64,000 nt of DNA from Hypanus sabinus (Eukaryota): positions 149,358,001-149,422,000 of the forward strand of contig NC_082710.1 of NCBI RefSeq assembly GCF_030144855.1, read 5' to 3'. The number at the start of each line of letters is the position of its first letter. Within the stretch, counting starts at the first letter, position 1. This document shows positions 2,704 through 64,000 of the stretch, in pieces. A model generated the notes under the pieces. The model was given only the letters and a program-made list of their open reading frames with translations, searched no databases and had not been told where the DNA came from. A program made the position numbers and the translations under genes.

Positions 2704-2964
2704 GCTCTCACTCTCTCCGTTATTTCTACACGAGGGTGACCCCAGGGTCGGGGGTCCCAGAGTTCATGAGATCTGGGTATGTGGACGAAGAGCAGACAAA
2801 TTACTATGACAGTGTCGTAGGCCGAGACAAGCCCCGTCAGCAGTGGATGGCGGACAGTCAGGGACCCGACTACTGGGAACGGTTGACAAAGATCTTACGA
2901 GGATGGGAGCAGTTATTCAAGGACAGCATCCAGATCCTCATGGAACGGACCAACCAGACAGTGG
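2704..2964 (+). CDS. MHC class I gene A, alpha1 exon
   Basis: cag|GC TCT CAC...GTG G|gtgagt; 261 nt, phase 1-1; GSHSLRYFYT...GYVDEEQ...GPDYWER...RTNQT with Y7, Y59, R84 and N86 sequon. Confidence 0.97.
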
Positions 2965-2989
2965 GTGAGTGGTGAGCAACGTGGAGTGA

Positions 2990-3464
2990 GGGGTTGATGG
3001 GAGGGACCGGGCATTGGGGGGTGTAACAGGGAACAGTGGTAGGGATTGGGGGGGGGGTAACTGTGTGGATTGTGTCAGGCAAAGGGGGTCATGGAATTAT
3101 GGGGGTTGGGGATTAACTGGGAATTGTAGGGAGACTGTGTGGTCAGGGTGGCTGTGGGTATTGTTGGGGGGACTGGGTGACTGTTGGGGGGGAAACAGGG
3201 TTACTGTGGGGTGTGGGGGGACTGGGTAACTGGAGGGACTGGCAGTTAACTGAGAATGTAGGGTGGGGTAGGGGGGTATGTGTGCCTGGGGATTGTGGGA
3301 GGGGATGGGGTAACTGGGGATTGTGGAGGGTAACTGATTCTGGGGGGTGGGGGGTGATTGTGGTGGGGATGGGGTAATGGGATTGTGGGGAGCACGGTAA
3401 CTGGGGTGTGGGGACAGGGTAAGTGGGGATTGAGGGGTGGCGGTAATAACTGGGGATTGTGGAG
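2990..3464 (+). repeat. G/T-rich degenerate tandem repeat of gene A intron 2 (5' part)
   Basis: Repeated GGGGTAACTGGGGATTGTGG-like units; resumes at 12539-12860 beyond the ERV. Confidence 0.8.
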
Positions 3465-3881
3465 TGTCGTGGAAATTGCACTTTGGGTGAAAAGAATACT
3501 TAACTCCTGAGTCTCGTTTTGGGACCTTCATTTTACTTGGGACCAAGGAGAGAGAGAGCTGGTCTCCACCAGCACCCAACTGTACTCACCTGTTACAATA
3601 GCATCCTTTTGTACAGTTCAGCGTAGTAACTGCAGACTTAAAATAATATATCCAAGCATTATATAGGAATATTACCACTCTAATAATATACTAATGTTTC
3701 TATAAAAAGAAAAAGCAGATACAAGTTCAATTATCTTGAAAGCTCAGTGCATTAGTTTCTGTTCCTCTGGTCACAGCAGGTTAGACTCTTGCAAGAGTTA
3801 GCATGTACTGTTCCCTATTTGCACACAAGGGTTTTTGCTTTGCCTCCACAAATCCCTCATTGTTGACCTTCTAGCTCAACA
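3465..3881 (-). mobile_element. ERV 3' LTR (left)
   Basis: TG...CA, 417 bp; homologous to 10431-10490 plus 12239-12538. Confidence 0.8.
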
Positions 3882-5364
3882 CTCATATTGTTTACCCTGT
3901 TCACATTTGTATTCTCTCATTGAGTCTCTCTCTAGGAAGGGGGCTTTGTAACCCTCAGGAAAGGGACGCAATTTCAGACGTAACTCCTCATCATAGCTAT
4001 CACTAATAATCTCTTCTTCCTCCCCTTCCCTGGAGGTTCCAGGCCTTTCCAGTTTGTCTTCGTACATACATGGGGGCCAGAGTCATTGGGCCCTGTCCTC
4101 TGGAGGCTAGTATGGCAGAGGAATCTTGTGGCCAGTAAACAAATGACCACAATTACAAGTATTATCCCATAATGTACCAGCGTCTCCCACCAGTTTCCAA
4201 GCAGCCACCATTCTCCCCCAGGTTGGGTTATAGTTGTGGAACTGCCCACCCACCTGTTTTATTTTAGTCACTGATTTCTTCATGTGATCTGCCAGATTAG
4301 TGCTGATTTCTGATTTGTCGGGTATATACATGCAACATTCCTGCCCTGTGATAGCGCAAGTCACCCCTTTCTCGGCCAGCAGGAAATCAAGGGCCATTTT
4401 GTTCTGAAGAGCCCCCTTTCTCCGGGCTCGGTCTCCGCAGTGACAGCTTCTCGAGCCTGTCGGGTTGTATTGAGCCCCTCTGCTGTGGCATTCGCCAGTT
4501 TCTCAAGGGCAGTGGCAATATTCATCAATACCGTGGCCGTCTTCGTGACCCCATCAGAGGGAACAGCTATCATCCAAAATCGCTCCATTTTGGAGATTGC
4601 CCTTGTCTTGTTCCTGCTTTCCCCCTTTTCCCAGTGTGGGTGGTCTGTTTCTAACCGGGGGTACTGCAAACCCAGGGTACCAGTCATTCTTTAGCCAGGG
4701 GTAAACTCGCTCCCCACAGATCTAAAAGGTGTTGTTTGGCAGAGGTGGGGACTGGGGAAGGTAGTACTATTGTGGCCGGTCCCATTACTCTTCTTTTCTC
4801 CGTTCACTTACTCCATCCTGTCTTCCACAGCCCATTCTCCTTGCAGCAACAGGTGCCTCCTCTGTCTATATACTACCATCCGGGGGGGGGGTGAGTCTGA
4901 AATGTCAGGGTAACGTGGGAAATAGGATCCATTTAGCAGACCCGTTGGCCCCCTCAGTCCCATTCCCTGTTCCCCTGTGCCATTGCTGCCTCGCCAGCAA
5001 GGTGTCCTTCCTCCAGGGCCATTGTAGGTGGTACCACTGGGGTAAAACTGTATCTCCACAACATGGGGCCTGCTCCTCCCATCCAATTCCAAGTCCCCCC
5101 TCCTCTTTTTTTGGTGAGGGGTATAGCCACAAAGGGCATCTTCCGTCCTCCTCCGGTGTGTGCTGGTATCACCATACAGACCCAACAGCTTGTGTGGGTG
5201 GTGCTATTCACATAATCATACGCCAACTGGAGGAAGGTATTCTTGGATTCAACTCCGAGTCCTCTGATTGCAGTGGTTAATAGTCCAGTTATTAACAGTG
5301 AGTGGGACCACAAGGTGGTGTGGCTCCTTTCACTCGACTCGGCAGCTGAACAGGTGCTGTTCAC
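3882..5364 (-). pseudogene. env: Retroviral envelope remnant (SU+TM), frameshifted
   Basis: SU NTFLQLAY...SCWVC (CXXC); furin-like RNKTR|AISKMERFW; ISD-like FQNKMALDFLLAEKG; CX6CC (CAITGQECC); hydrophobic IILVIVVICLL; split over several frames. Confidence 0.92.
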
Positions 5365-5399
5365 TCCAGTTCACTCAGGTCTGTTGTTCCTCTCCTTTC

Positions 5400-6450
5400 T
5401 CGTAGTGCCGTTTGCACCGAGTGGTGTGAATCCAGTCGGGTTTTCCTTCTCCCTTCACTGCAGTCCGAGTGACCAACCGGACTGATAGGGTCCTCTCCAC
5501 CTCGGAGAGAAAGATCCTTTTGTCACAGTTCGAACATATACCCAATCTGCTGGTTTGAAGAGGTGCACATTTCCTTCGGTCGGGAGTCTGGGCATCCCTC
5601 ACTTGGCCAGGAAGCTTTTCCACCTGGGGACACAGTGCTTGTGCATATGTTAGGGTTTTTCATCATTCCAGATTAAAGCCACTCTCTCCGGTGTCATCAG
5701 GAGCTTCAGCCCCGTTGTCATTGGTCTACCCATGAATATTTTGTGTGGGGTGAACCCCGTACTCCTATTCTTCCGGTTTTGCAAAGCATCCATTACCGGA
5801 GGCAAATCCTCTGACCATTTAATATCATTCTGCTGACACACCTAGCCTGGTACATTTCTTATTTCTCCGTTTACCCTTTCCATCATTCCTGAGGATTGGG
5901 GTTGATAGGGGAAGTTTAACTTCCACTGAAATCCCAGGGCGACTTTCAGCCCTTGCACTAATCTGTTAGTAAAATGAGTTCCCGGTCACTATTAATGCAG
6001 AATGGAATCCCAAATCTTGGTAGGATTTCCTTCATTAGGGCATTCACTACTGTGCTGGCATCATCCTTCCTGGTTCTTCCTGGTTCGTTCTGCCTTCCTG
6101 GTTTAGGAATGGGAAGGATGGGGGTGATGCAGCACCTCCTGTATCAGGTGTTACAGACACGATGCCTTCCTCTGCCTGAGCTGTCGGGCGATAATGCCGG
6201 CGAGAGCTTTTGGGTAGAGCAGGGGGTCTGGCTGCGACGGGCACTGTCACTGGAATAACGCCTTTAACATCATAGGTTTTAGAATAATCCTTCCTGTCTG
6301 CCTGTCAAAGATCTCGATGGTGAGCATAGTCGCTCCCGGGATTAGAACAGAGATTGTCTGGGCTGGGTGTGAAGTTTGTGACAGACGGTGCACCGTAGAT
6401 CCAATGTGCTTTGCCCTAGTGGGGGGGGAGGGGCTTATGGCCACTGTGAG
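5400..6450 (-). pseudogene. pol: Retroviral integrase remnant
   Basis: KEILPRFGIPFCINSD, YQPQSSGMMERVN, RSTGFTPHKIFMGRPM; stops and frameshifts; no RT or RNase H seen. Confidence 0.85.
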
Positions 6451-6779
6451 CTGGGGGTCGACAGGTCCCCTGTGAGAGAGCCTCTCTGTTTTCCATCAGT
6501 CTCGCTGTTGTTTGTTTAGTTCTACTGATACCCCCAGCCCTTTGGGGCCCAAGAACAGAAGGGGCCCGGTTATCGAGATCTCCCTGCCCCCAATGTAGGG
6601 GACTGCCTGCTCATCGTAGGTGGGATCTACATCCTGCCCGTAGAATACATCAATTCCTCTGTGTCCGTCTCCAGGGGAGCACTCGGGGCCAACGGGAGAT
6701 ACTGTCCCAGTGGCGGTTGGGAGGCCGGGGGATTATTCTTATGCGGTCATTTATCTTTCCGAGGGAAGTCTCCTGGCTA

Positions 6780-7050
6780 CCTCCACTCATTTATAAAAAC
6801 AGCTGATCAAATAATCCATATCCCAATTCGGATCCCCATCTCCCATTTCCAGTATCTTTCCCTTCCCTTATCAGTCCCTTATCTAACGCAAGTTAAATGT
6901 TCCGACATAGGGCCAATCTCCTTGCGACCACCCGTACAGGTCCCTACTAAACGTTACCCCGTATCGATCATCCCGTTTCATGTATTACTGTATCGGTCGG
7001 TGATCCAGGCGGTACCAGGGGGTCCCCAATTTTCGATGCTCTCTTACCTT
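6780..7050 (-). pseudogene. Probable gag matrix remnant
   Basis: Minus-strand WSQGDWPYVGTFNL resembles the WPxxGTF motif of gamma/epsilon-like matrix proteins. Confidence 0.5.
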
Positions 7051-7135
7051 CTCGATGTTCTCCTCCGTCTTTTTACTTACTCTCAAGGTTCCTTCATCAG
7101 CAGGACCAGCATTACCTGATCGACCGCTGCCGTTT

Positions 7136-9937
7136 CAATAGACAATAGGTGCAGAAGTAGACCATTCGGCCCCTCGAGTCTGCACCGCCATTCTGAGATC
7201 ATGGCTGATCATTCACTATCAATACCCAGTCCCTGCCTTGTCCCCATATCCCTTGATTCCCCTATCCATCAGATATCTATCTAGCTCCTTCTTGAAAGCA
7301 TCCAGAGAATTGGCCTCCACCGTCTTCCGAGGTAGTGCATTCCACACCTGCACAACTCTCTGGGAGAAGAAGCTCTTCCTCAACTGTTTTAAATAACTGA
7401 CATCTTATTCTCAATCCATGCCCTCTGGTACTGGACTCTCCTGACATCTGGAACATATTTCCTGCCTCAATCCTATCAAATCCTTTAATTATCTTAAACG
7501 TTTCAATCAGATCCCCTCTCAATCTCCTCAATTCCAGCGTATACAAGCCCAATCTCTCTAATCTCTCTGCGTAAGACAGCCCTGCCATCCCAGGAATCAA
7601 CCTAGTGAATCTACGCTGCACTTCCTCAATTGCCAGAATGTCCTTCCTTAAACCTGGAGACCAAAACTGTACACAATATTCCAGGTGTGGTCTCACCAGG
7701 GCCCTGTACAAATGCAAAAGGACATCCTTGCTCTTGTACTCAATTCCCCTTGTAACAAAGGCCAACATTCCATTTGCCCTCTTCACTGCCTGTTGCACTT
7801 GCTCATTCACCTTCATTGACTGATGAACTAGGACTCCTAAGTCTCTTTGCATTTCTCCCTTACCTAACTCTACACCGTTCAGACAATACTCTGCCCTCTT
7901 GTTCCTGCTTCCAAAGTGGATAACTTCACATTTATTCACATTGAATGACATCTGCCAAGTATCTGCCCACTCACCCAGCCTATCCAAGTCTCCCTGTATT
8001 CTCCTAACGTCCTCTTCGCATGTCACACTGCCACCCAGTTTAGTATCGTCAGCAAACTTGCTGATATAGTTTTCAATGCCCTCATCTAAATCGTTGACAT
8101 AAATCGTAAAGAGCTGTGGTCCCAATACAGAGCCCTGTGGTACCCCACTAGTCACCTCCAGCCAGTCCGAGAAACACCCATTCACTGCTACCCTTTGCTT
8201 TCTATCTGCCAACCAGTTTTCTATCCATGTTGAAACCCTGCCCCCAATGCCATGAGCTCTGATTTTACTCACCAATCTCCTATGTGGCACCTTATCGAAT
8301 GCCTTCTGAAAATCTAGGTACACAACATCCACTGGCTTACCCTCGTCTAACATCCTTGTTACACCCTCAAAAAACTCCAACAGATTAGTCAAGCATGATT
8401 TGCCCTTGGTAAATCCATGCTGGCTCGGCCTAATCCTATTTCTGCCATCTAGATGTGCCACTATTTCGTCCTTAATAATGGACTCAAGCATCTTCCCCAC
8501 GACTGACGTTAGGCTAACAGGGCGATAGTTCTCCGTTTTCTCCTTCCCTCCCTTCTTGAAAAGTGGGATAACATTAGCCACTCTCCAATCTTCAGGAACT
8601 GATCCTGAATCTAAGGAACATTGGAAAATGATTACCAATGCATCCGCAATTTCCTGAGCCACCTCTTTTAGAGCCCTTGGGTGCAGACCATCTGGACCTG
8701 GGGATTTATTAGCCTTCAGTCCTACCAGTCTACTCATCACAGTTTCTTTCCTAATGTCAATCTGTCTCAATTCCTCTGATATCTTATGACCCTGGCCCAT
8801 CCATACATCTGGGAGATTGCTTGTGTCCTCCCTGGTGAAGACAGATCTAAAGTACTCATTAAATTCTGTTGCCATTTCCCTGTTTCCCATAACAATTTCT
8901 CCCAATTCATTCTTCAAGGGGCCAACATTGTTCTTAACTATCTTCTTTCTCTTCACATAGCTAAAAAAGCTTTTGCTATCCCCTTTTATATTCCTGGCTA
9001 GACTGAGCTCATACCTGATTTTTCTGTCCGTATTGCTTTTTTAGTTAAGATCTGCTGCTCCTTAAAACTTTCCCAATCATATGTATTCCCACTCATCTTA
9101 GCCCTGTCATACTTCTTTTTCTTTAATGCTATACAATCTCTGACTTCCTTTGTCAACCACTGTGGCCCCTTCCCCCTCTTTGAATCCTTCCTTCTCATTG
9201 GAATGAACTGCTTTTGCATCTTTTGTATTATGCCCAAGAATATCTGCTGATCCACTGTCTTTCCTGCCAGGGCATCCGCCCATTTAACTTTGGCCAGCTC
9301 TTCCCTCATGGCTCCGTAGTCTCCTTTATTTAATTGCAACACTGACACCTCTGATCTGCCCTTATCCCTCTCAAATTGTAGATAAAAACTTATGTTATGA
9401 TCACTACTTCCTAATGGCTCCTTTACTTCAAGATCACTTATCAATTCCTGTTCATTACACATCACCAAGTCCAAAATTGCCTCATTCCTGGTTGGCTCAA
9501 GCACAAGCTGTTCCAAAAATACATCCCTTAGACACTCCACAAACTCCCTATCTTGGGGTCCAGCACCAACCTGATTCTCCCAGTTCACCTGCATGTTGAA
9601 ATCTCCCATAACGACTGCATTACCTTTAGCACATGCCAATGTTAACTCCCTAATCAACTTGTACCCAATATCCACGCTACTGTTTGGGGGCCTGTACACA
9701 ACACCCATTAGGGTCTTTTTACCCTTACTGTTCCTCAGCTCAATCCACACAGACTCTACTTCCCCTGTTCCCAAGTCACCTCTTGCTAAGGACTGAATCT
9801 CATTCCTCACCAACAGGGCCACCCCACCCCCTCTTCCCATATTTCTGTCTCTACGATAGCACATATACCCTGGTACACTCAATTCCCAGGCCTGATCCCC
9901 TTGCAGCCATGTCTCCGTTATCCCAACAATATCGTAG
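7136..9937 (-). mobile_element. 5'-truncated CR1 LINE, near-intact ORF2 (APE + RT)
   Basis: ORFs 8998-9882 (VYRPPN, MGDFN, GSSDH) and 7277-8956 (YLDFQKAFDKV, GVPQGSVLGP, FADD) separated by one frameshift; CAATAGA-repeat tail at 7136. Confidence 0.96.
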
Positions 9938-10538
9938 GATCACTGGAACAACACAGTGGGTCAGGCAGCATCTCTCTCAATCCTTCTTGCCTTTTTCTCT
10001 TCTTCCTGTCAGCAGAGTGGTTTAATTTTCACGTCCCCCAAACCCCAGTTTCTCTTTGAGCTCTCATCGGTTCATGTGGTCCCTTCCCGAGCGATGGGAG
10101 TCGAGTCGCTGCGTTCTTTATGATTTCTTCCAATTTCGTCCCCTATCTTTTCTTAGTCCCCCAGGAACTGTGTCTCCGGCTGGAGATAAGTACTCCTGGA
10201 GTTGTCTCTGCACTGGACGGCCTCGGGATGCCTTACTCCCAGAGTTAGGTCCCTTGAGCTGTAATTACTCTCGCCAATTCTCTCACTTCTTACAAATTCA
10301 CAGCTTTCTTTTGCACATTAGGATAGCAATTCTGATCGTTTCCTTTTCTACTGGGGTTTTCCCCAGCTCTCCCGCCCCCACCCCCGTTCGCATCTCATTA
10401 ACACTGAGACCCTGCTGACGTGCTCCTGATGGTCATGAAAGTTTGACCTTGGGTGATAAGAATACTCAACTCCTGAGCCTAATTTCGGGGGGAGAGAGAG
10501 AGAGGGGGGGGGGGAGAGAGAGAGAGGGGGGTGAGAGA

Positions 10539-10921
10539 NNNNNNNNNNNNNNNNNNNNNNNNNNNNNNNNNNNNNNNNNNNNNNNNNNNNNNNNNNNNNN
10601 NNNNNNNNNNNNNNNNNNNNNNNNNNNNNNNNNNNNNNNNNNNNNNNNNNNNNNNNNNNNNNNNNNNNNNNNNNNNNNNNNNNNNNNNNNNNNNNNNNNN
10701 NNNNNNNNNNNNNNNNNNNNNNNNNNNNNNNNNNNNNNNNNNNNNNNNNNNNNNNNNNNNNNNNNNNNNNNNNNNNNNNNNNNNNNNNNNNNNNNNNNNN
10801 NNNNNNNNNNNNNNNNNNNNNNNNNNNNNNNNNNNNNNNNNNNNNNNNNNNNNNNNNNNNNNNNNNNNNNNNNNNNNNNNNNNNNNNNNNNNNNNNNNNN
10901 NNNNNNNNNNNNNNNNNNNNN
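10539..10921. other. Assembly gap (383 N) next to a GA/G-rich microsatellite
   Basis: Run of N after (GA)n/G tract at 10487-10538. Confidence 0.99.
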
Positions 10922-10928
10922 TAGAATA

Positions 10929-12238
10929 CAGGCGGCCCCCATTTTTCGAACGTTCTTTTTACATCAACTTGCTGTTATGAAAGACCTACATTAGTACTTC
11001 TTTTTACTAACCAAAGAGGATTTTCGCTTTTACGAAAAAAAGACGCCCGCTTTGTGTTGACCCCGGGAAAGACTACAATGACCATGCGGGCAGTTGTGTG
11101 TCGCATGCGTGTTTTTTCTCCGAATCGGTTTTCGCTCGCTGTCTTCCGGAGTTTGATAAGTGAAGCTACACCATACATACAATACTTCTACTTTATATAG
11201 GCTGTATATTTATCATAACATAACACTAACATAGTAAAAGCAGGAATGATAAGTTTTGTGTCTTATTTGGTTTGATTTGGTAGGGTGTTTTGGGGTCTGG
11301 GAACGCTCAAAAATTAATGGTAATTGTTTCTTCGATTTACGCCAATTCGGCTTACTTTCAGGAACGCGGCCGGATGGACCCAAACGCAAGACGCAGACAC
11401 TGAAGTACTAGGGGGAGGACAGGACGGGGATGCCATGGCATTTAAGGGTAGAGCTGGGGTTCAGGCAGATAGAGTTCAGGCAGGCAGGTCCCTGGGGTGC
11501 AGGCAGGTAGACAGCTGGCTAGATAAGCTGGCGGAGAGCCCTCCTGGGGCTGGCCGCATATATCCCAGGTAGGGATGCCTCCCAGGCGGAAACACCAGAG
11601 ACCTGGGCACGACGCGAACCCCTAGGCGGGTGCGGGGCACAATCCCAGGGTTCGGGCGGAAGAGGAGGATGGGGCAGAACCACTGCCGGGCAGCGGCAGG
11701 TCGGCCGGACCTGCCCGACAGAGGAAAGGGGTAGGAACGGGCATAGGTCCAGAGTGACCAACACAACAGTCATGACAACGGGAAAATCGGAAACGACCGG
11801 CAGACAGGGCGACCGCGCGAAAACAAACGAGCGGAGAAGCGGGACAGCGCATGGGAAGAAAGGTGGGGGAAGAGGACCAACCTGGTAGTACCAGCACGGA
11901 GCAGTGAAGCATGATGAAGAGAAGATCTGAGCCCGGGCGGGATCACAGAATGCAAAGTAGAGTTCGGAGCCGGCAAGGAAACAGAACAAAACAACCACCT
12001 GCCTGGTCCCAGTCCCAAGGCCCCTTATAACACCTGCAGCTCCATGAGATATAGGTGTGTCTCCTTGAACCAGGAGGGTCCTAACTCGATCACGGGTGAT
12101 GGGAGGGACAACTGCAGGACCCGGAGTCCGGAGCCCTCGGACCGGATCAAAACCCGGAAAGCAGATTACAGACCGGACCCTGACACTTACAAATGGTTTC
12201 ATAGGAACGCTCTACCTTCGGATTGTGGGGGAAACCTG
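10929..12238. mobile_element. Tigger/TcMar-like MITE (~475 bp without its nested insert)
   Basis: TA on both sides; imperfect TIRs CAGGCGGCCCCCATTTTTCGAA and revcomp CAGGTTTCCCCCACAATCCGAA; removal restores LTR sequence AATAGCATCC. Confidence 0.75.
11356..12185 (-). mobile_element. Solo LTR (Gypsy-like), 830 bp, CpG-rich
   Basis: CTTAC duplicated at 11351-11355 and 12186-12190; ends TTTCAGG (mutated TGTCAGG) and CCTGACA; no coding remnant. Confidence 0.8.
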
Positions 12239-12913
12239 TAGCATCCTTTCATACTGTTCAGCATAGTAACAGCAGACTTACTATAATATGTCCAATCATT
12301 GTATAGGGATATTACCACTCTATCAATATGTTACAGTTTACTATAAAAAGCAGTTACAAGTTAAACTATCTTGCAGAACTCAAGCACATTGGTTTCTGTT
12401 TCTCTGGTCACAGCAGATTAGACTCGTACCTTATTTCACAAGAGTTAGCACCTAACGTTCTCTGTTTGCGCACAAGGGTCTTTGCTTTGCTGTCTCCTCG
12501 ACCCTCGTCACGTAGCTTATTGGCCCTTTTCCTCCACATGGAGGGTATCTGTGGTGATTGTGGGGTGATGGGGTAACTGGGGTTTGTGGAGGTGGGGTGA
12601 CTGGGGGTTGTGGAGGGTAACGGGATTGTTGAGAGGTGATGGGGTAACAAGATTGTTGGGTGATGGGGTAACTGTCAGGATTATGGGGTGACGGTAACTG
12701 GGGATTGTGGGGTTAATGGGGTGATGGGGTAACTGCAGGGATTGCAGGGGTGACGAGTTAACTGGGGATTGTGGGGGTGATGGGAGTAACTGGAGATTAT
12801 GGGGGTGTCGGGTAATTGGGGTGTTGGGGGTGACGGGGTGAATTATGGGGGTGTGATTTGAACCACGTTTGACAGATCTGGGTCCCCCCCACCCCCACCC
12901 CCGGTTGTTCCAG

Positions 12914-13186
12914 GGATCCACATTTGGCAGATTATGTACGGCTGTGAGCTCCATGACGACGGGACCACCACCGGGTTCGTTCAGTACGGCTGGGATGGGT
13001 CGGACTACATCAGGTTTGACAAGGACCAGAGTGTGTGGGTGACCCCTGTGACCTGGGGTATTATCACCAAGAACAAGTGGGACCGGAACACGGCCGGGAA
13101 CCAGGATTGGAAGGGATACCTGGAGCAGGAGTGCATCAAATGGGTGAAGACATACGTCAAGGCCGGGGAGAGTCACCTGAAACCCA
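12914..13186 (+). CDS. MHC class I gene A, alpha2 exon
   Basis: cag|GG ATC CAC...CCC A|gtgagt; 273 nt; IHIWQIMYGCEL...YGWDGSDY...TKNKW...YLEQECIKWVKTY (T143, K146, W147, Y159, Y171, both Cys). Confidence 0.97.
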
Positions 13187-13409: not shown

Positions 13410-13673
13410 ATCCCCCCGAAGTCTCGTTCACCGCCTCCAAGGATGGCGGCCTCCTCTCCTGTGTGGCCACTGGCTTCTACCCTCAGTCCATCAACGTGAC
13501 TATTCTGCGGAATGGCCGGATCATGGAGGAGACCCATTCCCACGGGATCCTGCCCAATCACGACAACACCTACCAGCTGACCAGGACGTTGTGGGTGGAG
13601 CCGACGGACACTGCAGAGTTCTCCTGTCGGGTGGAACACCGGCGTCTCCGAGAGCCCCTCGTCCTGTTCCTGG
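13410..13673 (+). CDS. MHC class I gene A, alpha3 (IgC1) exon
   Basis: cag|AT CCC...CTG G|gtaag; 264 nt; LSCVATGFYP...LPNHDNTYQL...FSCRVEH. Confidence 0.97.
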
Positions 13674-13961
13674 GTAAGAGACACTCACCAGTGGGGTGGT
13701 ACATGGACAGTGAGAGAGAGGGGGCTTGGCTGACCACTGGCCCAGGGCTGGGATTGTGAGGGGGCATTGTTGACCTCTGGTCCAAGAGCACAGTGAGGGG
13801 TCACTGTTGACCACAGACCCAGGAGAGGACGGGGAGGAATCAGTGGTTGGTCTCTCTTTGTGGGATGGGAGGATGAGGGTGTGGGTGGGGTTGGTGAAGG
13901 GAGAATCGGGGTTATCCCTGTCTCTGTCACTGATGTGACTGTTTCTCTGAATCATCAACAG

Positions 13962-14063
13962 GTTCAAAGTCCAACTCCATCCCAATCTGGATCATCGCTG
14001 TCGTTGTGGTCCTGGTGATCCTGGTGGTCGTCATCACTGTTGGTGTTGCCTACAAAAAGAGAG
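13962..14063 (+). CDS. MHC class I gene A, transmembrane exon
   Basis: cag|GT TCA...AGA G|gtagg; 102 nt; SKSNSIPIWIIAVVVVLVILVVVITVGVAYKKR. Confidence 0.95.
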
Positions 14064-15099
14064 GTAGGATTGGAGGGAGTTGGACTTCCCCTGGGGAAAG
14101 GGGCTTGGGCAGGGTGTGTCCTGCCATTCCTCAGCAAAGCCCATCCCACCACCCTTGTGGGTGCCCCACATCCAACGTTGTCTGTCTTCGCCCGCACTAT
14201 TCACCACCTCTGTTTGTTCTCCCATTATAACATATTCTGCCTCTTAACTGTCCATAATGTGTCAGCCCCGACACCACCCCCAGCAGTGTCCCACACACCC
14301 CTCTGACATCCTCCCACTGTACTTCCTTTCAATCAGCCTCACGAGGATGTTCTTTGGTATTAGACATTGCTTTTCTGGTTAAAGCCAAAGCTGGCTGTCC
14401 ACTTTATCTAAGCTTCTTGTCATCTTATAGACTAATGATCACTTTGTTTTCTACTTTCCCCCAGTGCAAGAGTCATCAAGTCAGACTGTATGAAATTAGT
14501 CCCTTTGGCCTGACCTGCCTTTGCTGACCACATACTTGCATACTCTGATCCCATTTCCTTGCCCCTCTCTACCTTGGTGATTCAAGTACCTGTCTAGATC
14601 TATCTTCAATGTTGTGAGAGTCTTTCTTCATCGCTACGTCAGTGTATTTGATTCCAGCCATCTTCTGGGGCAGGGTGTGAGAAACATTCTTTCCTCTGGT
14701 CACTCCCAGTGATCTTGTTCCTCGCTTACAGACTCTGATTATGGACTCCTCTGCTCCGGGAAATCAATTCCTCCTACCTGTCCCACCTGAGCCTCTCATT
14801 ACCGTGTGCGTCCATACCTGGTGGACCTGACCAGGGTCAGTATTAGAGTAAATGGTCACTCCAAACCTCCCACTGACCTCTCTGTCACACACCAGCTTTG
14901 TTCCGTCTCATGGCCTCACAATGAGTTGGGGCTCCTGCTGGTCCTGTTGGATGTGTCTCCTTTCACAAATTGTAGCTTGAGTTCTGTTTGATTGGGATTC
15001 AGAGCCCACTGGGCAGGTACTGAATCTATCTGGTTATATGCTGGGGATGTGGGACCGTTCTCACTGACTGTCTCTGTTTTACAGCCGCGTGTTTCTCAG

Positions 15100-30620: not shown

Positions 30621-30843
30621 CGGCAACGACGGTCGCAGTTCTTCCATGGATGCTGCTCGCGCTGAATTTATTAGGCAGCTTATCTTTCTCCTTCACTCAC
30701 CTGTGGAGACCCATCCACAAAGCAGGGCAAACCGTAGTAGAAGTAGCTTCATCCCTCCTCCCGATGTCACCCGGGTTTGGCCCCCAGCGTCTGCTCCGGG
30801 AGCTGTAACAGCAGAACCTTGTCTCTCTCCCCCCCGGTCCTAC

Positions 30844-31143: not shown

Positions 31144-31192
31144 ATGGTGGGTCTGCTACTGCTGGCCCTCCTATGTGGAGGGGTCTCCGCAG
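31144..31192 (+). CDS. MHC class I leader exon of locus B/C
   Basis: ATG...GCA G|gtgagt; MVGLLLLALLCGGVSA; 49 nt, phase 1; homologous to 63214-63262. Confidence 0.9.
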
Positions 31193-44110: not shown

Positions 44111-44963
44111 TTACCATGTAATCTCTTCACTAAAGGCCAAATATTATCTCACAGAATGGCCGCACCCTCTTTTCCTACCCTTCCTATTGCTTTCAGTGAT
44201 CCCACAAATTCTGCCTGTCCCACTGTTGCCTCTGGTACTGTTGATTAAGTGACGTCCTGTCCATCAGTGGAGAGTGTATCCTGCATTTAGATCCTCTCTC
44301 TGCTTTGAATGTGGTTTTCCAGAGACAGCGGCACATGGGACAGATGTCACCCTCTTGCGGGAGATGTAATGCCCCACCCTCTGGACATTGTGTCTATAAT
44401 CCCAGGGGCACTGTACCCAGGAGTCACTGTGGGTCAGAGGTGAAGTGAGAAGCACTCTGCAGGAGCTGTGAGAGTGCTGCTACTGTTGGGAAACTTGGTG
44501 CAAGTTCTCAGCTGGTCTGTCCACTGAGAGCAGGGAAAAACTAAACCCGGGAGGGAGCGCATACGAGTCCTCACCCCGATTGGGAGTATTCCCACCTGCA
44601 CTGAGCACATCCCTATCCTCCCAGAGCCACTTACCCCGACCTCAGAGAGACACACAGATGATTTAACCAGTCTGGTCCTGGTGAACATGTCCTGTTTCAT
44701 AACCCCACTCCATCACCCAGTCAGGACACCACAACTCATGGATATAGGCAGCTCAACCAGGGAACTGCAGATGTGATCAGGGATATGGACCCACACTGTC
44801 TTCAGCTGCATTTATATGCCCCTTGGGGTGAAGGGTCAGGCCTGATTCTCCGGTTTTAGGACTCCGATTCTCTCAGGGGGTTGGGGGTCGAGCTCAGCAT
44901 CCTAGGTCTCTGGGTGTTGGTTTTAGGTATAGGTTCTTCTCTGACTCTCTCTTCTGGCTCCAG

Positions 44964-45224
44964 GCTCTCACTCTCTCCGTCATTTCTACACGGCGGTGAC
45001 CCCGGGGTCGGGGGTCCCTGAGTTCATGGCAGTCGGGTATGTGGACGAGGAGCAGATCATTTACTACGACAGTGTGTTGGGACAGACGGTTCCCCGTCAG
45101 CAGTGGATGGCGGAGAGTCAGGGACCTGACTACTGGGAACGGGAGACACAGATCTCTCGGAGCCACGAGCAGTGGGCCCAGGCCAAAACCCAGACCTTAA
45201 TGATGCGGACCAACCAGACGGGTG
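44964..45224 (+). CDS. MHC class I cassette B, alpha1 exon
   Basis: cag|GC...GGT G|gtgagt; 261 nt open; GSHSLRHFYTAV...GYVDEEQ...GPDYWERETQ...RTNQTG. Confidence 0.97.
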
Positions 45225-45239
45225 GTGAGTGGCGAACCA

Positions 45240-46400
45240 TGCTGGGGGGGTGGTGTGGCAGAGGGGAGCCCATGGGTGTTGGGGATTAGAGGGGTGATGG
45301 TAGAGATTGTGGGATGGGAGGGGTGTGGAAGGTGATGGTGGGGTTTGTGAGGTGGTGGAGGTGATGGTAGGGATTGGTGTGGGTGTCATGCAATGGATTG
45401 AGGTGGGAGGCCGGCTGTGACATTAGCGATTGTGGGCTGTGAATTAGGGATTGTGGGGGTTAGCAGTGGTGACAGGGATTGTGGGCTGGCAGTGGTGACG
45501 TTAGGACATGTGGGCGAGGTGGCAGGGATGACATTAGGGATTTGGGTGGCGGGGGTATTGTTGGGCATTGTGGGAGTTGGCAGGGGTGATGTTAGGGATA
45601 GTGTGGGGTGGCAGTGGTGACTTTAGTGATCATGGGGATGTACAGGGGTGATGTTAGGGATCATGGGGTGTGGCAGAGATGACATCAGGGTCATGGGGCT
45701 AGTAGGGATGACGTTAGTGATCATGAGGGTGTGCAGGGGGATGTTAGAGAATGTGGGAGGGATGGTGGGGTGTCGTCAGTGATTTGGCAAGGGGTGGTAG
45801 TGGTGATGTTAGGGATTGAGGGGTGGCGGGTGTGTCAATAGTGATTGTGTTGGGGTGGCAGTTGATGGTAAGTTTTGAGCGGGGTGGGGGTGAGTGTAGG
45901 GGCAGTGTTGGGGTAAGGGTTTGACAATAAAGAGTGTTTTGGGGGAGGGGTGATGATAGGGAATGTGCAGGGGTGAGGGAGGTGATGTTGGGGAGGGGGC
46001 GAGGGGGGAGGGAGTGGCATTAGGGACCATATGTGGTGGGGGCTGTTGTGGGAGTGATGGTGGGCATTGTGTGGCTGGTTGGAGGTGACGTAAGGAATTG
46101 TGGTGGTGGGATGGCAGTGATTGTGGGGGATGACAGTGGGGATTTTGGAGAGCAGGAGTGATTGTAGGTTTTGTGTTGTGACTGACGGTAGAGATCATAC
46201 AGGGTGGGGAGGAGTGGGTGATGGTAGGGACAGGGCAGGAGTCAAGTGCAGTGGTGGGGAGACAGAGTGACAGTAGGGTGTGGGTGGGGACTGTGCAGGA
46301 GGTGAGAGGTGACATGGGAAGTAATGTAGGGGTGGGTCAATGGTGGGGTGTGGTGCAGAAGTGACGGTGGGCTCTGTGCAACGGTGACAGTAGGGACTGT
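45240..46400 (+). repeat. G/T-rich low-complexity intron 2 of cassette B
   Basis: Degenerate GTGACRTTAGGGAT / GGGATTGTGGG units; near-identical to 51260-52380. Confidence 0.75.
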
Positions 46401-46525
46401 GAAGGGTGGGGGAACGTGTGGGGGTGAATATTGATTCCACCTGGGGGAGTGGAAGAATGAGCCACAACTGCAGCATGGAAAGTTGTCCGCAGTCCCACAA
46501 CTCACCAATGGATGACGTGTTCCAG

Positions 46526-46798
46526 GGATCCACTTTCTCCAGAGGATCTACGGCTGTGAGCTCCGTGACGATGGGACCACCACCGGGTTCAATTGGTACG
46601 GCTGGGACGGGTCAGACTTCATCTCCTTCGACAAGGACCGGATGGTGTGGGTGACCCCTGTGCCCTGGGGTGTCATCACTAAGGACAAGTGGGACCGGAA
46701 CACGGCCATGAACCAGGATTTGAAGGGATACCTGGAGCAGGAGTGCATCGAATGGGTGAAGAGATACGTCAGGGCCGGGGAGAGTCACCTGCAACCCA
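46526..46798 (+). CDS. MHC class I cassette B, alpha2 exon
   Basis: cag|GG ATC CAC TTT...CCC A|gtgagt; 273 nt open; YGCEL...NWYGWDGSDF...TKDKW...YLEQECIEWVKRY. Confidence 0.97.
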
Positions 46799-46999
46799 GT
46801 GAGTGCATGGGGGAGTGGTCAATGTGAGCGCCTGGGAGTGGCATTCAATGTCTGCAACCCCCATCTCCACCCTCCCCTGCCCACCCCTTGCCACCTCCAC
46901 TGCCACCACCACCTCCTCTGCAACCTCTCCCACACAGTCTCCTCTTCCCATCCCCTTTCTACCTCCACTTAATGCTTCCTCTTTCTCCCCCAACCCCAG

Positions 47000-47263
47000 A
47001 TCCCCCCGAAGTCTCGTTCACCGCCTCCAAGGACAACCGCCTCCTCTCCTGTGTGGCCACTGGCTTCTACCCTCAGACCATCGACGTGACTATTCTGTGG
47101 AATGGCCGGACTCTGGAGGAGACCCATTCCCACGGGATCCTGCCCAATCACGACCACACCTACCAGCTGACCAGGACGGTGCAGGTGGAGCCCACGGACA
47201 CTGCAGAGTTCTCCTGTCAGGTGGAACACCGGGGTCTCCCCGAGCCCCTCGTCCTGTTGTTCG
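47000..47263 (+). CDS. MHC class I cassette B, alpha3 exon
   Basis: cag|AT...TTC G|gtaag; 264 nt open; both Ig cysteines. Confidence 0.97.
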
Positions 47264-47894
47264 GTAAGAAACACCACTGGCTGTGAGGTACATGGGCATC
47301 TAACGTTGCCCAACTTCACCCCACCATTCCCCACCACTTTTCCTTCTCCCATTATAAAGTATCCGTGTTGTTTCTGCCTCTCTCTGTAGTGTCCTGGAGC
47401 AGAACTGTATAACACAGTATTGGCCCTTTTGCCCACAAAGTGGTGCCGACCTCTTAACCCACTCCACGGTCAATCGAACACATCCCTCTCACAAATCGTC
47501 CATTTTTCTTTCATCCATGTGCCTAAATTAGAGTCTCTGAACTGTCCTTTCTGTGCCAGACTCCAGCACCACCACAGCAGTCTTCCACGCACCCCTCTGA
47601 CATCCTCCCACTGTACTTCCTTTCAATCAGCCTCACAAGGATGTTCTTTGGTATTAGACATTGCTTTCCTGCTTAAAGCCAAAGCTGGCTGTCCACGTTA
47701 TCTAAGGTTTTCTGTGTTTCCATGGCCTCACAATGAGTTGGGGCCCCTGCTGGTCCTGTTGGATGTGTCTCCTTTCAAATTGTAGCTTGAGTTCGGTTTG
47801 ATTGGGATTCAGTGCCCACTGGGCAGGTACTGAATCTATCTGGTTATATGTTGGGGATGTAGGACCATTCTCACTATCTGTCTGTGTTTTTCAG

Positions 47895-47924
47895 CAGGGA
47901 ACAAAGGCTACAATCCCACCAAAA
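47895..47924 (+). CDS. MHC class I cassette B, cytoplasmic exon 1 (no TM exon before it)
   Basis: ttttcag|CA GGG AAC AAA GGC TAC AAT CCC ACC AAA A|gtaag = AGNKGYNPTK. Confidence 0.85.
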
Positions 47925-47974
47925 GTAAGTTCACTGTAAATCACAGCTGGAATGGTTGTATTACATTGTTCATG

Positions 47975-63213: not shown

Positions 63214-63262
63214 ATGCCGCGTGTACTACTGCTGGCACTCCTTTGTGGAGGGGTCTCCGCAG
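63214..63262 (+). CDS. MHC class I gene D leader exon (rest of gene off-window)
   Basis: MPRVLLLALLCGGVSA G|gtgggt; following intron homologous to 31193-31520. Confidence 0.9.
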
Positions 63263-64000
63263 GTGGGTGAGAAGTCAATGGGACACCCAGATCCTGGTCA
63301 GTGACAGGCTGGACACAGGGTAACATACCCCCAGATAGGGGTTGAGCAGCTGGGAAGACGGTAACAGGCCCTGATCTGACCGCTCATACTGAGCTCAGTG
63401 GGTATCAGCTAGGGGGTGGGGGGGGGGGGGAGTTGGTGGTAGGCTGTTGGAATCCAGAAACTGCGCACGGGGTGAAGAGGGCGGGGAGAGATGACATAAC
63501 CTCGGCACTTTCACTGACCTGGGCCTGAAGTGTGTCACTGAACAAGTGGACAGTGGGACACCAGGGATCCGGTTAGCACTGGGGTTTGCGGAGTGGCACA
63601 GGAAGAGACCATTCGGTCCTCTCTACAGTGCTATGCAAATTTCTTAGGGACATATCTACAGCTGGGATGCCCAAGATTTTTGCACAGTTCTCTACTTGTT
63701 TAAGTGGAGTGGAGAGCGAGTTTGTCAATCTGGCGAGAGCAGAGGATGTTGGGAATGACGAGGGTGGAGCGCCGCGGGAGGGGTATGGGACAGGTGGCAG
63801 AGAAGGAGAGCCAGGGGCGGTGGGTGGTGCAAGTACAGACACACCCCCATTTGATTCCAAACAACTGGTTTTTTGATCACTACAGAATGTTTTTCTTTCT
63901 TCCTGCTCCCGCCGCTCTTCCTGCACCTTTCACACTCTTAGTCCCATATCAGAATCAGGTTTATAATCACTCACATATGTCGTGAAATTTGTTTTTTCCT

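Follow-up and report, generated by a model that had tools for sequence, protein, structure and literature searches.

Soluble forms of MHC class I are well known in mammals: the ectodomains of mouse Q10, HLA-G5/G6 and TM-skipped HLA are released without a membrane anchor, and HLA-G serves, as a disulfide dimer, as a multivalent ligand for inhibitory receptors. To our knowledge, no mammalian soluble class I molecule carries two ectodomains on one polypeptide. The original prediction for the locus described here rested its precedent on these mammalian cases, which are real but too narrow a frame. In salmon, Sasa-ULA and Sasa-ZBA are class I genes that lack the transmembrane (TM), connecting peptide and cytoplasmic regions in the genome itself (PMC2846915). 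Sasa-ULA keeps all nine peptide-terminus residues and adjoins a classical locus (PMC2846915). In the literature searched, no description of a tandem, multi-unit, anchorless class I chain was found.

The 64-kb window analysed here (the whole stretch of 64,000 nucleotides, from the stingray Hypanus sabinus) holds a class I cluster of the ray MHC, with the whole set on the + strand. Searches by tblastn with exon translations and reference proteins recovered three alpha1, three alpha2 and three alpha3 exons, three cyt1-type exons, two terminal tail exons, two good leader exons and a single TM exon. The last belongs to gene A, the TM-bearing paralogue (RefSeq P0292, 347 aa), whose leader lies beyond the upstream edge of the window and whose intron 2 (2706-12914, ~10 kb) contains transposon-like insertions and an assembly N gap (10539-10921). 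A G-rich minisatellite, with units such as GGGGTGATGGGGTAACTG, fills intron 2 in all three class I copies. Near the other edge begins a further class I gene (343 aa), most of which lies past the window end, with orthologues in Hemitrygon (P0288) and Mobula (P0289).

The remaining domain exons form two cassettes, B and C, which are two tandem alpha1-alpha2-alpha3 units of one gene, LOC132394446, with a coding sequence at 31144-54810 (a recorded span of 23,667 bp; Table 1). The cassettes are direct repeats of 3.2-3.8 kb (self-BLAST), 94% identical over the first 2.8 kb and with an intron identity of 93%. A nine-exon model with canonical AG/GT sites throughout translates exactly to XP_059826596.1 (isoform X1, 573 aa; P0279), which runs from the leader through alpha1-alpha3 of B, the peptide AGNKGYNPTK and alpha1-alpha3 of C to a 15-aa hydrophilic tail, ASDKGESSSNSSALA. 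Isoform X3 (563 aa) skips cyt1 of B and joins alpha3 of B straight to alpha1 of C; isoform X5 (476 aa) omits alpha1 of C. A chain that included cyt1 of C would end at AGNK, because of the TGA at 54501. The last coding exon is homologous to the cytoplasmic-tail end of TM-bearing class I. Our confidence in this genomic architecture—one gene, two tandem units and no TM exon—is high. The RefSeq models are computational, and transcription is suggested by the isoform models only. The same gene was also reached from alpha1 of B, which was searched profile-free against 1.8 billion representatives and returned multi-unit ray proteins, with follow-up searches leading to LOC132394446; its RefSeq names ('hereditary hemochromatosis protein homolog', 'uncharacterized protein') obscure its identity.

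Table 1. Features of the class I cluster in the Hypanus sabinus window; the last line refers to Pristis pectinata DNA (L001).
Feature	Position	Strand	Remarks
Gene A alpha1	2706	+	tblastn
Gene A alpha2	12914	+	tblastn
Gene A alpha3	13410-13673	+	tblastn
Gene A segment missing from B and C	13707-14168	+	holds the whole TM exon
Gene A TM exon	13962-14063	+	102 nt, AG/GT-flanked, SKSNSIPIWIIAVVVVLVILVVVITVGVAYKKR
Gene A cyt1	near 15.1 kb	+	
Gene A tail exon	ends 15427	+	
G-rich minisatellite, intron 2	45300-46500, 51300-52480, 12520-12880, 3286-3413		
Leader (signal peptide) exon, B+C gene	31144-31192	+	MVGLLLLALLCGGVSA/G, GTGAGT donor; tblastn and exon model
Repeat copy B	44794-47977	+	intron 1 3' end, alpha1-alpha3, TM-less intron, cyt1; self-BLAST, pairwise alignment
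alpha1, unit B	44964-45224	+	261 nt; Pfam MHC_I
alpha2, unit B	46526-46798	+	273 nt
alpha3, unit B	47000-47263	+	264 nt, C1-set
Deletion junction, B	47287-47308	+	GGTACATGG-G-CATCTAACGTTG; A 13706 joined to A 14169
SINE-like insertion	B 47380-47560, C 53355-53540		
cyt1-derived exon, B	47895-47924	+	30 nt, AGNKGYNPTK; inter-unit linker in X1, skipped in X3
Inter-unit insert	47978-50811	+	mixed repeats and a degenerate, frameshifted LINE reverse transcriptase
Repeat copy C	50812-54569	+	starts inside intron 1; no own leader
alpha1, unit C	50983-51243	+	
alpha2, unit C	52506-52778	+	2 synonymous differences vs B
alpha3, unit C	52980-53243	+	
Deletion junction, C	53267-53288	+	same as B
cyt1 exon, C	54490-54519	+	in-frame TGA 54501-54503 (AGNK, stop); skipped in RefSeq models
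Last coding exon	54764-54810	+	(A)SDKGESSSNSSALA and stop codon; hydrophilic
Next class I gene, leader exon	63214-63264	+	MPRVLLLALLCGGVSAG
Pristis 30-nt duplication	L001 22257-22289, 28973-29005		3' end of alpha3

The units are recognisably class I. In P0279, Pfam identifies MHC_I (PF00129, E = 9.5e-95) and C1-set (PF07654), each in two stretches, and the closest solved structure is the classical class I molecule of the nurse shark (6LUP, E = 2e-101). The leader is of a kind typical of ray and shark class I. Both Hypanus units keep the four cysteines, the NQT N-glycosylation site (N86-equivalent) and eight of the nine peptide-terminus residues, the exception being Y7, which is H in both. The TM segment of the class I heavy chain is absent, and of the cytoplasmic part the terminal tail exon alone is retained. 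An AlphaFold2 model of the 573-aa chain from a 23-row alignment gave a mean pLDDT of 48.5 and a pTM of 0.29, too low for judging the arrangement of the units or whether alpha3 of one unit might take the place of beta2m.

Absence of the TM exon is marked by a precise junction. The motif GGTACATGG stands at 13698-13706 in gene A, at 47287 in B and at 53267 in C, and CATCYAACGTTG at 14169, 47297 and 53277, respectively. In gene A, GGTACATGG and CATCCAACGTTG (14169-14180) lie ~462 bp apart; in B and C the two junction motifs are separated by 1 nt, a single G, and the junction—which can also be written GGTACATGG-G-CATCTAACG—is identical in both, with homology to A of 88-91% on either side. This bears out the original prediction that some 460 bp, including the whole 102-bp TM exon, is missing from both cassettes. 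The loss is neutral for the reading frame, since all internal exons, the 102-nt one included, have lengths divisible by three and phase 1-1, and for the same reason every exon combination stays in frame, as had been proposed for exon skipping. The cassettes record one event, not two independent ones: B and C are direct repeats that share not only the junction but also a SINE-like insertion of ~165-180 bp (…cagaactgtataacacagtattggcccttttgcccacaaagtggtgccgacc…), found in B and C but not in A just 3' of the TM deletion, which places a single deletion before the B/C duplication. The ACAT reported at the two breakpoints in A does lie near each (13701-04 and 14168-71). It was not reduced to one copy, however: the junction reads ACATGG-G-CATCT and retains parts of both, so that a microhomology-mediated deletion of the simple kind is not supported. 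Elsewhere in the repeats, C carries a local duplication of ~100-150 bp at 53565-53662, and B lacks 475 bp that are found in A (14427-14908) and in C.

Comparison with related species, which had been put forward as a check, recovers predicted genes of a similar kind in other rays. A single leader is followed by three units and the same tail, and no TM segment is encoded, in the X1 models of Mobula birostris (836 aa) and M. hypostoma (838 aa). Both Hypanus and M. hypostoma have a class I gene of one unit (336-343 aa) ~8.3-8.4 kb farther downstream (in Hypanus, the leader at 63214 is 8,404 bp beyond the end of LOC132394446); for M. birostris no downstream gene is listed in the flank examined. An EEQI motif is shared by unit 1 of M. 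birostris and B, while units 2 and 3 have ELLI, comparable to DLLI in C. In the best maximum likelihood tree, the eight TM-less units of the myliobatiform rays (Hypanus and Mobula) form one clade, with weak support (34/91).

A gene of similar build occurs in the sawfish Pristis pectinata, where LOC127585898 (L001) has one leader, three alpha1-alpha2-alpha3 units and one tail exon. Its repeat boundary differs, the break lying in intron 4, upstream of the TM exon; its lone TM exon is intact, with splice sites kept, but lies on the opposite strand (L001 39802-39695). The inverted segment (L001 39640-40120) includes flanking intron and is itself flanked by G-rich and C-rich inverted repeats. In the two internal units, alpha3 carries an in-frame 30-nt tandem duplication (GLPEPLILLR, then DLPEPIPQLH) that the terminal unit lacks, and DLPEPIPQLH serves as a 10-residue linker between units of the Pristis chain. 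The units of LOC127585898 group with the TM-bearing Pristis P0294, and forcing them into the Hypanus and Mobula clade is rejected (p-AU 6e-5). From these sequence comparisons, class I genes with several units and no anchor seem to have originated separately in two orders of batoids. Two further candidates, Mustelus P0170 and Pristis P0171, were rejected as true multi-unit genes; the TM segments in both, together with an internal leader in P0171, identify them as mis-fused neighbouring genes. Outside the window, the RefSeq models P0176 and P0004 of another Hypanus class I gene carry an extra TM+cyt1 block between alpha2 and alpha3, in the order alpha1-alpha2-TM-cyt1-alpha3-TM-cyt1-tail, a sign that blocks of exons have often been duplicated in this class I cluster.

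Because the duplication is later than the deletion, divergence between B and C reports on evolution after the TM exon was lost. Between their introns, 152 of 2294 aligned sites differ (6.6%) and there are 18 indels, most of them attributable to the intron 2 minisatellite; the domain exons have no indels in 799 bp, against ~6.3 expected (P about 0.002). Synonymous divergence (dS 0.065) matches the intron rate, and dN, at 0.032, is half of that (Fisher p = 0.0007 for nonsynonymous against intron sites). Neutral evolution had been named as an outcome that would undermine a functional reading. Overall, dN falls below dS, but by domain dN/dS is 0.4 for alpha1, 0 for alpha2 and 1.1 for alpha3, and gene conversion weakens such tests because it can mimic purifying selection and remove indels. 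The exons look constrained rather than decaying, which we take as moderate evidence for function, with gene conversion as a confounder.

The most serious rival explanation is that B and C belong to a class I pseudogene array that is decaying, though perhaps still transcribed, after inactivation by the TM deletion, and whose open reading frame persists solely through its phase 1-1 exons and overwriting by gene conversion from functional neighbours. Signs of relaxation are present: beyond the deleted TM exon itself, there are Y7H in both units, the stop in cyt1 of C, the LINE in the inter-unit intron, the SINE-like insertion and other intronic indels, and an alpha3 ratio near 1, with several of the alpha3 variants of B recurring in paralogues. 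Short RNA-derived protein fragments reaching from alpha3 to the tail were sought, with 0 candidates, an outcome that says little either way, and the best matches listed include no multi-unit orthologue for Hemitrygon akajei or skates. Decay is harder to reconcile with the six domain exons, which show no stop, frameshift or splice-site loss and retain canonical splice sites, or with the halved nonsynonymous divergence and the count of 0 versus 18 indels. Nor would it readily account for the wider pattern: all 11 TM-less units from four species keep the cysteines and the glycosylation site along with eight or nine of the nine anchor residues (nine of nine in every Mobula and Pristis unit), TM-less multi-unit genes sit at the syntenic position in two Mobula species, and the Pristis units have pairwise dN/dS of 0.24-0.53. 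We consider a pseudogene array unlikely, while granting it appreciable weight.

It is far less probable that B and C are separate genes, each encoding a single-unit secreted chain with its own signal peptide, as the original prediction had it. Each cassette does contain a full alpha1-alpha3 set and no TM exon, and a single leader combined with alternative splicing could yield single-unit isoforms; X5 already skips alpha1 of C. But copy C starts 171 bp before alpha1, inside intron 1 and abutting the 3' end of the LINE, and so has no leader or promoter of its own, and copy B stops 53 bp past cyt1, where homology to A ends (47977), without a terminal exon or 3' UTR. The sole leader serving both cassettes lies 13.8 kb upstream of B; tblastn across the window found only this leader exon, that of the next gene at 63214 and a degenerate antisense relic. 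The promoter and leader at 31144 align with the leader region at 63214, and both have TGACGC, ATTGG and CCAAT boxes, a point in favor of a working gene. RefSeq likewise counts B and C as one gene, and the nine exons give one chain. Of the earlier claim that every route yields a TM-less chain with a signal peptide, the first part stands, whereas the signal peptide is one that both cassettes share.

Two features of the surrounding DNA deserve mention. The antisense leader exon (30699-30752, - strand; MKLLLLRFALLCGWVSTG then GTGAG), ~390 bp upstream of the leader of the B+C gene, forms a head-to-head pair with it; as no minus-strand class I domain exons were found in the window, it looks like the relic of an inverted promoter/leader duplication. 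The inter-unit insert contains LINE reverse transcriptase fragments at 48.9-50.1 kb (Pfam RVT_1 in three ORFs) and matches other repeats in the window (BLAST). A multi-kb LINE target-site duplication was considered as the origin of the B/C repeat and rejected as not a simple target-site duplication, with 0.8 kb of other repeats lying between B and the LINE.

Slighter still is the chance that an overlooked exon, a GPI anchor or a partner protein keeps the product at the membrane, for which nothing in the sequence speaks. All + frames from alpha3 to the next used exon, and downstream of C, were scanned by the Kyte-Doolittle method, and no substitute hydrophobic exon was found, in agreement with what had been claimed for the interval between alpha3 and cyt1; the scan returned just Cys/TG-rich intron stretches, most of which recur at matching positions in A, and, from alpha3 as far as the downstream exons, no hydrophobic ORF segment that looked like an exon. 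Across the whole window, the sole tblastn match to the TM peptide is gene A. Read-through from alpha3 into the intron gives GKKHHWL and a stop in both copies, as anticipated, and the chain is TM-less on every splice route, whether alpha3 is joined to cyt1, to alpha1 or to the last exon, or is read through. The proposed check for TM and GPI signals gave a concordant answer: isoforms X1, X3 and X5 contain no hydrophobic segment, and the C-terminus, SDKGESSSNSSALA, being hydrophilic, carries no GPI signal. Least probable of all is an assembly artefact in which two haplotypes were set in tandem, for although MHC regions are prone to false duplications and the window has a gap elsewhere (10539-10921), the copies differ by 6.6% and 18 indels, have different ends and lie on either side of 2.8 kb of repeat DNA unrelated to them; multi-unit genes were also seen in independently assembled genomes, those of two Mobula species and Pristis.

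Set against these alternatives, the reading of LOC132394446 as an expressed, functional gene for a secreted tandem class I chain is the one we favor, and we regard it as somewhat probable on the evidence of its sequence. Its history, as read from the sequence, began with a classical-type (UAA-like) class I gene that lost its TM exon in one ~462-bp deletion spanning parts of both flanking introns. A tandem duplication later copied a 3.2-kb block whose limits lie 171 bp ahead of alpha1 and 53 bp past cyt1; the two copies are now separated by an insert that contains a LINE. In the predicted product, a signal peptide precedes two complete class I ectodomains, which are joined directly or by the 10 residues of cyt1, and the C-terminus is a hydrophilic stretch of 15 residues. 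Having neither a TM helix nor a GPI-type tail, it would enter the ER, where each unit would pair with beta2-microglobulin; it would probably load peptides, since the peptide-terminus residues are conserved; and, secreted by default, it would leave the cell as a bivalent, soluble form of class I. The role we would guess at, taking soluble HLA-G as the model, is that of a decoy or multivalent ligand for CD8 or for receptors of the NK type. Such genes were seen in four species, all of them live-bearing, which makes action at the interface of mother and embryo conceivable, again by comparison with soluble HLA-G, but purely speculative.

More tentatively, and with a chance that we put below even, batoids may in general make secreted 'poly-class-I' chains, two to three complete units on one anchorless polypeptide, an architecture with no fewer than two origins. 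Among stingrays and mobulids, deletion of the TM exon would have come first and duplication of the unit afterwards; in the sawfish, the duplication would have excluded the TM exon, the remaining TM exon would have been inverted and the 30-nt duplication would have made a linker. Such chains would serve as multivalent soluble ligands. If expressed, they would constitute a novel MHC architecture, multivalent for receptor binding by construction, in the oldest of the lineages that have adaptive immunity, and its apparent convergence between two orders of rays would speak for selection. They would also offer a clean natural test of class I function once the molecule is no longer a restriction element at the cell surface.

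How the stingray gene stands among known systems can be seen from comparison with the closest of them. Classical elasmobranch UAA (nurse shark 6LUP, Triakis UAA) is ~55-60% identical to the stingray units over alpha1-alpha3 and resembles the gene in exon structure and phases, leader type, the SDK.ESSSNSSA.A tail and the peptide-anchor residues; unlike it, UAA has a TM segment and a cytoplasmic tail, with a single unit per gene. The mis-fused models Mustelus asterias LOC144497682 and Pristis LOC127585955 are superficially alike, with at least 700 aa and several MHC_I and C1-set domains, but have a TM helix after each unit, whereas in the stingray and Mobula genes and in Pristis LOC127585898 there is a single leader and a single tail, with no TM segment. 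Mammalian soluble class I mostly arises from alternative splicing, intron retention or a mutated TM exon, in contrast to the exon deletion of the stingray. A secreted class I molecule in a cartilaginous fish would therefore join the soluble class I molecules already known, and the novelty would lie in the tandem chain of two to three units. Sasa-ULA and Sasa-ZBA are similar in that they, too, are TM-less in the germline, of classical-type ancestry and presumed secreted (PMC2846915). But they are single-unit genes of bony fish, whereas the stingray gene has two tandem units, uses the last 'cytoplasmic' exon as its C-terminus and is of independent origin.
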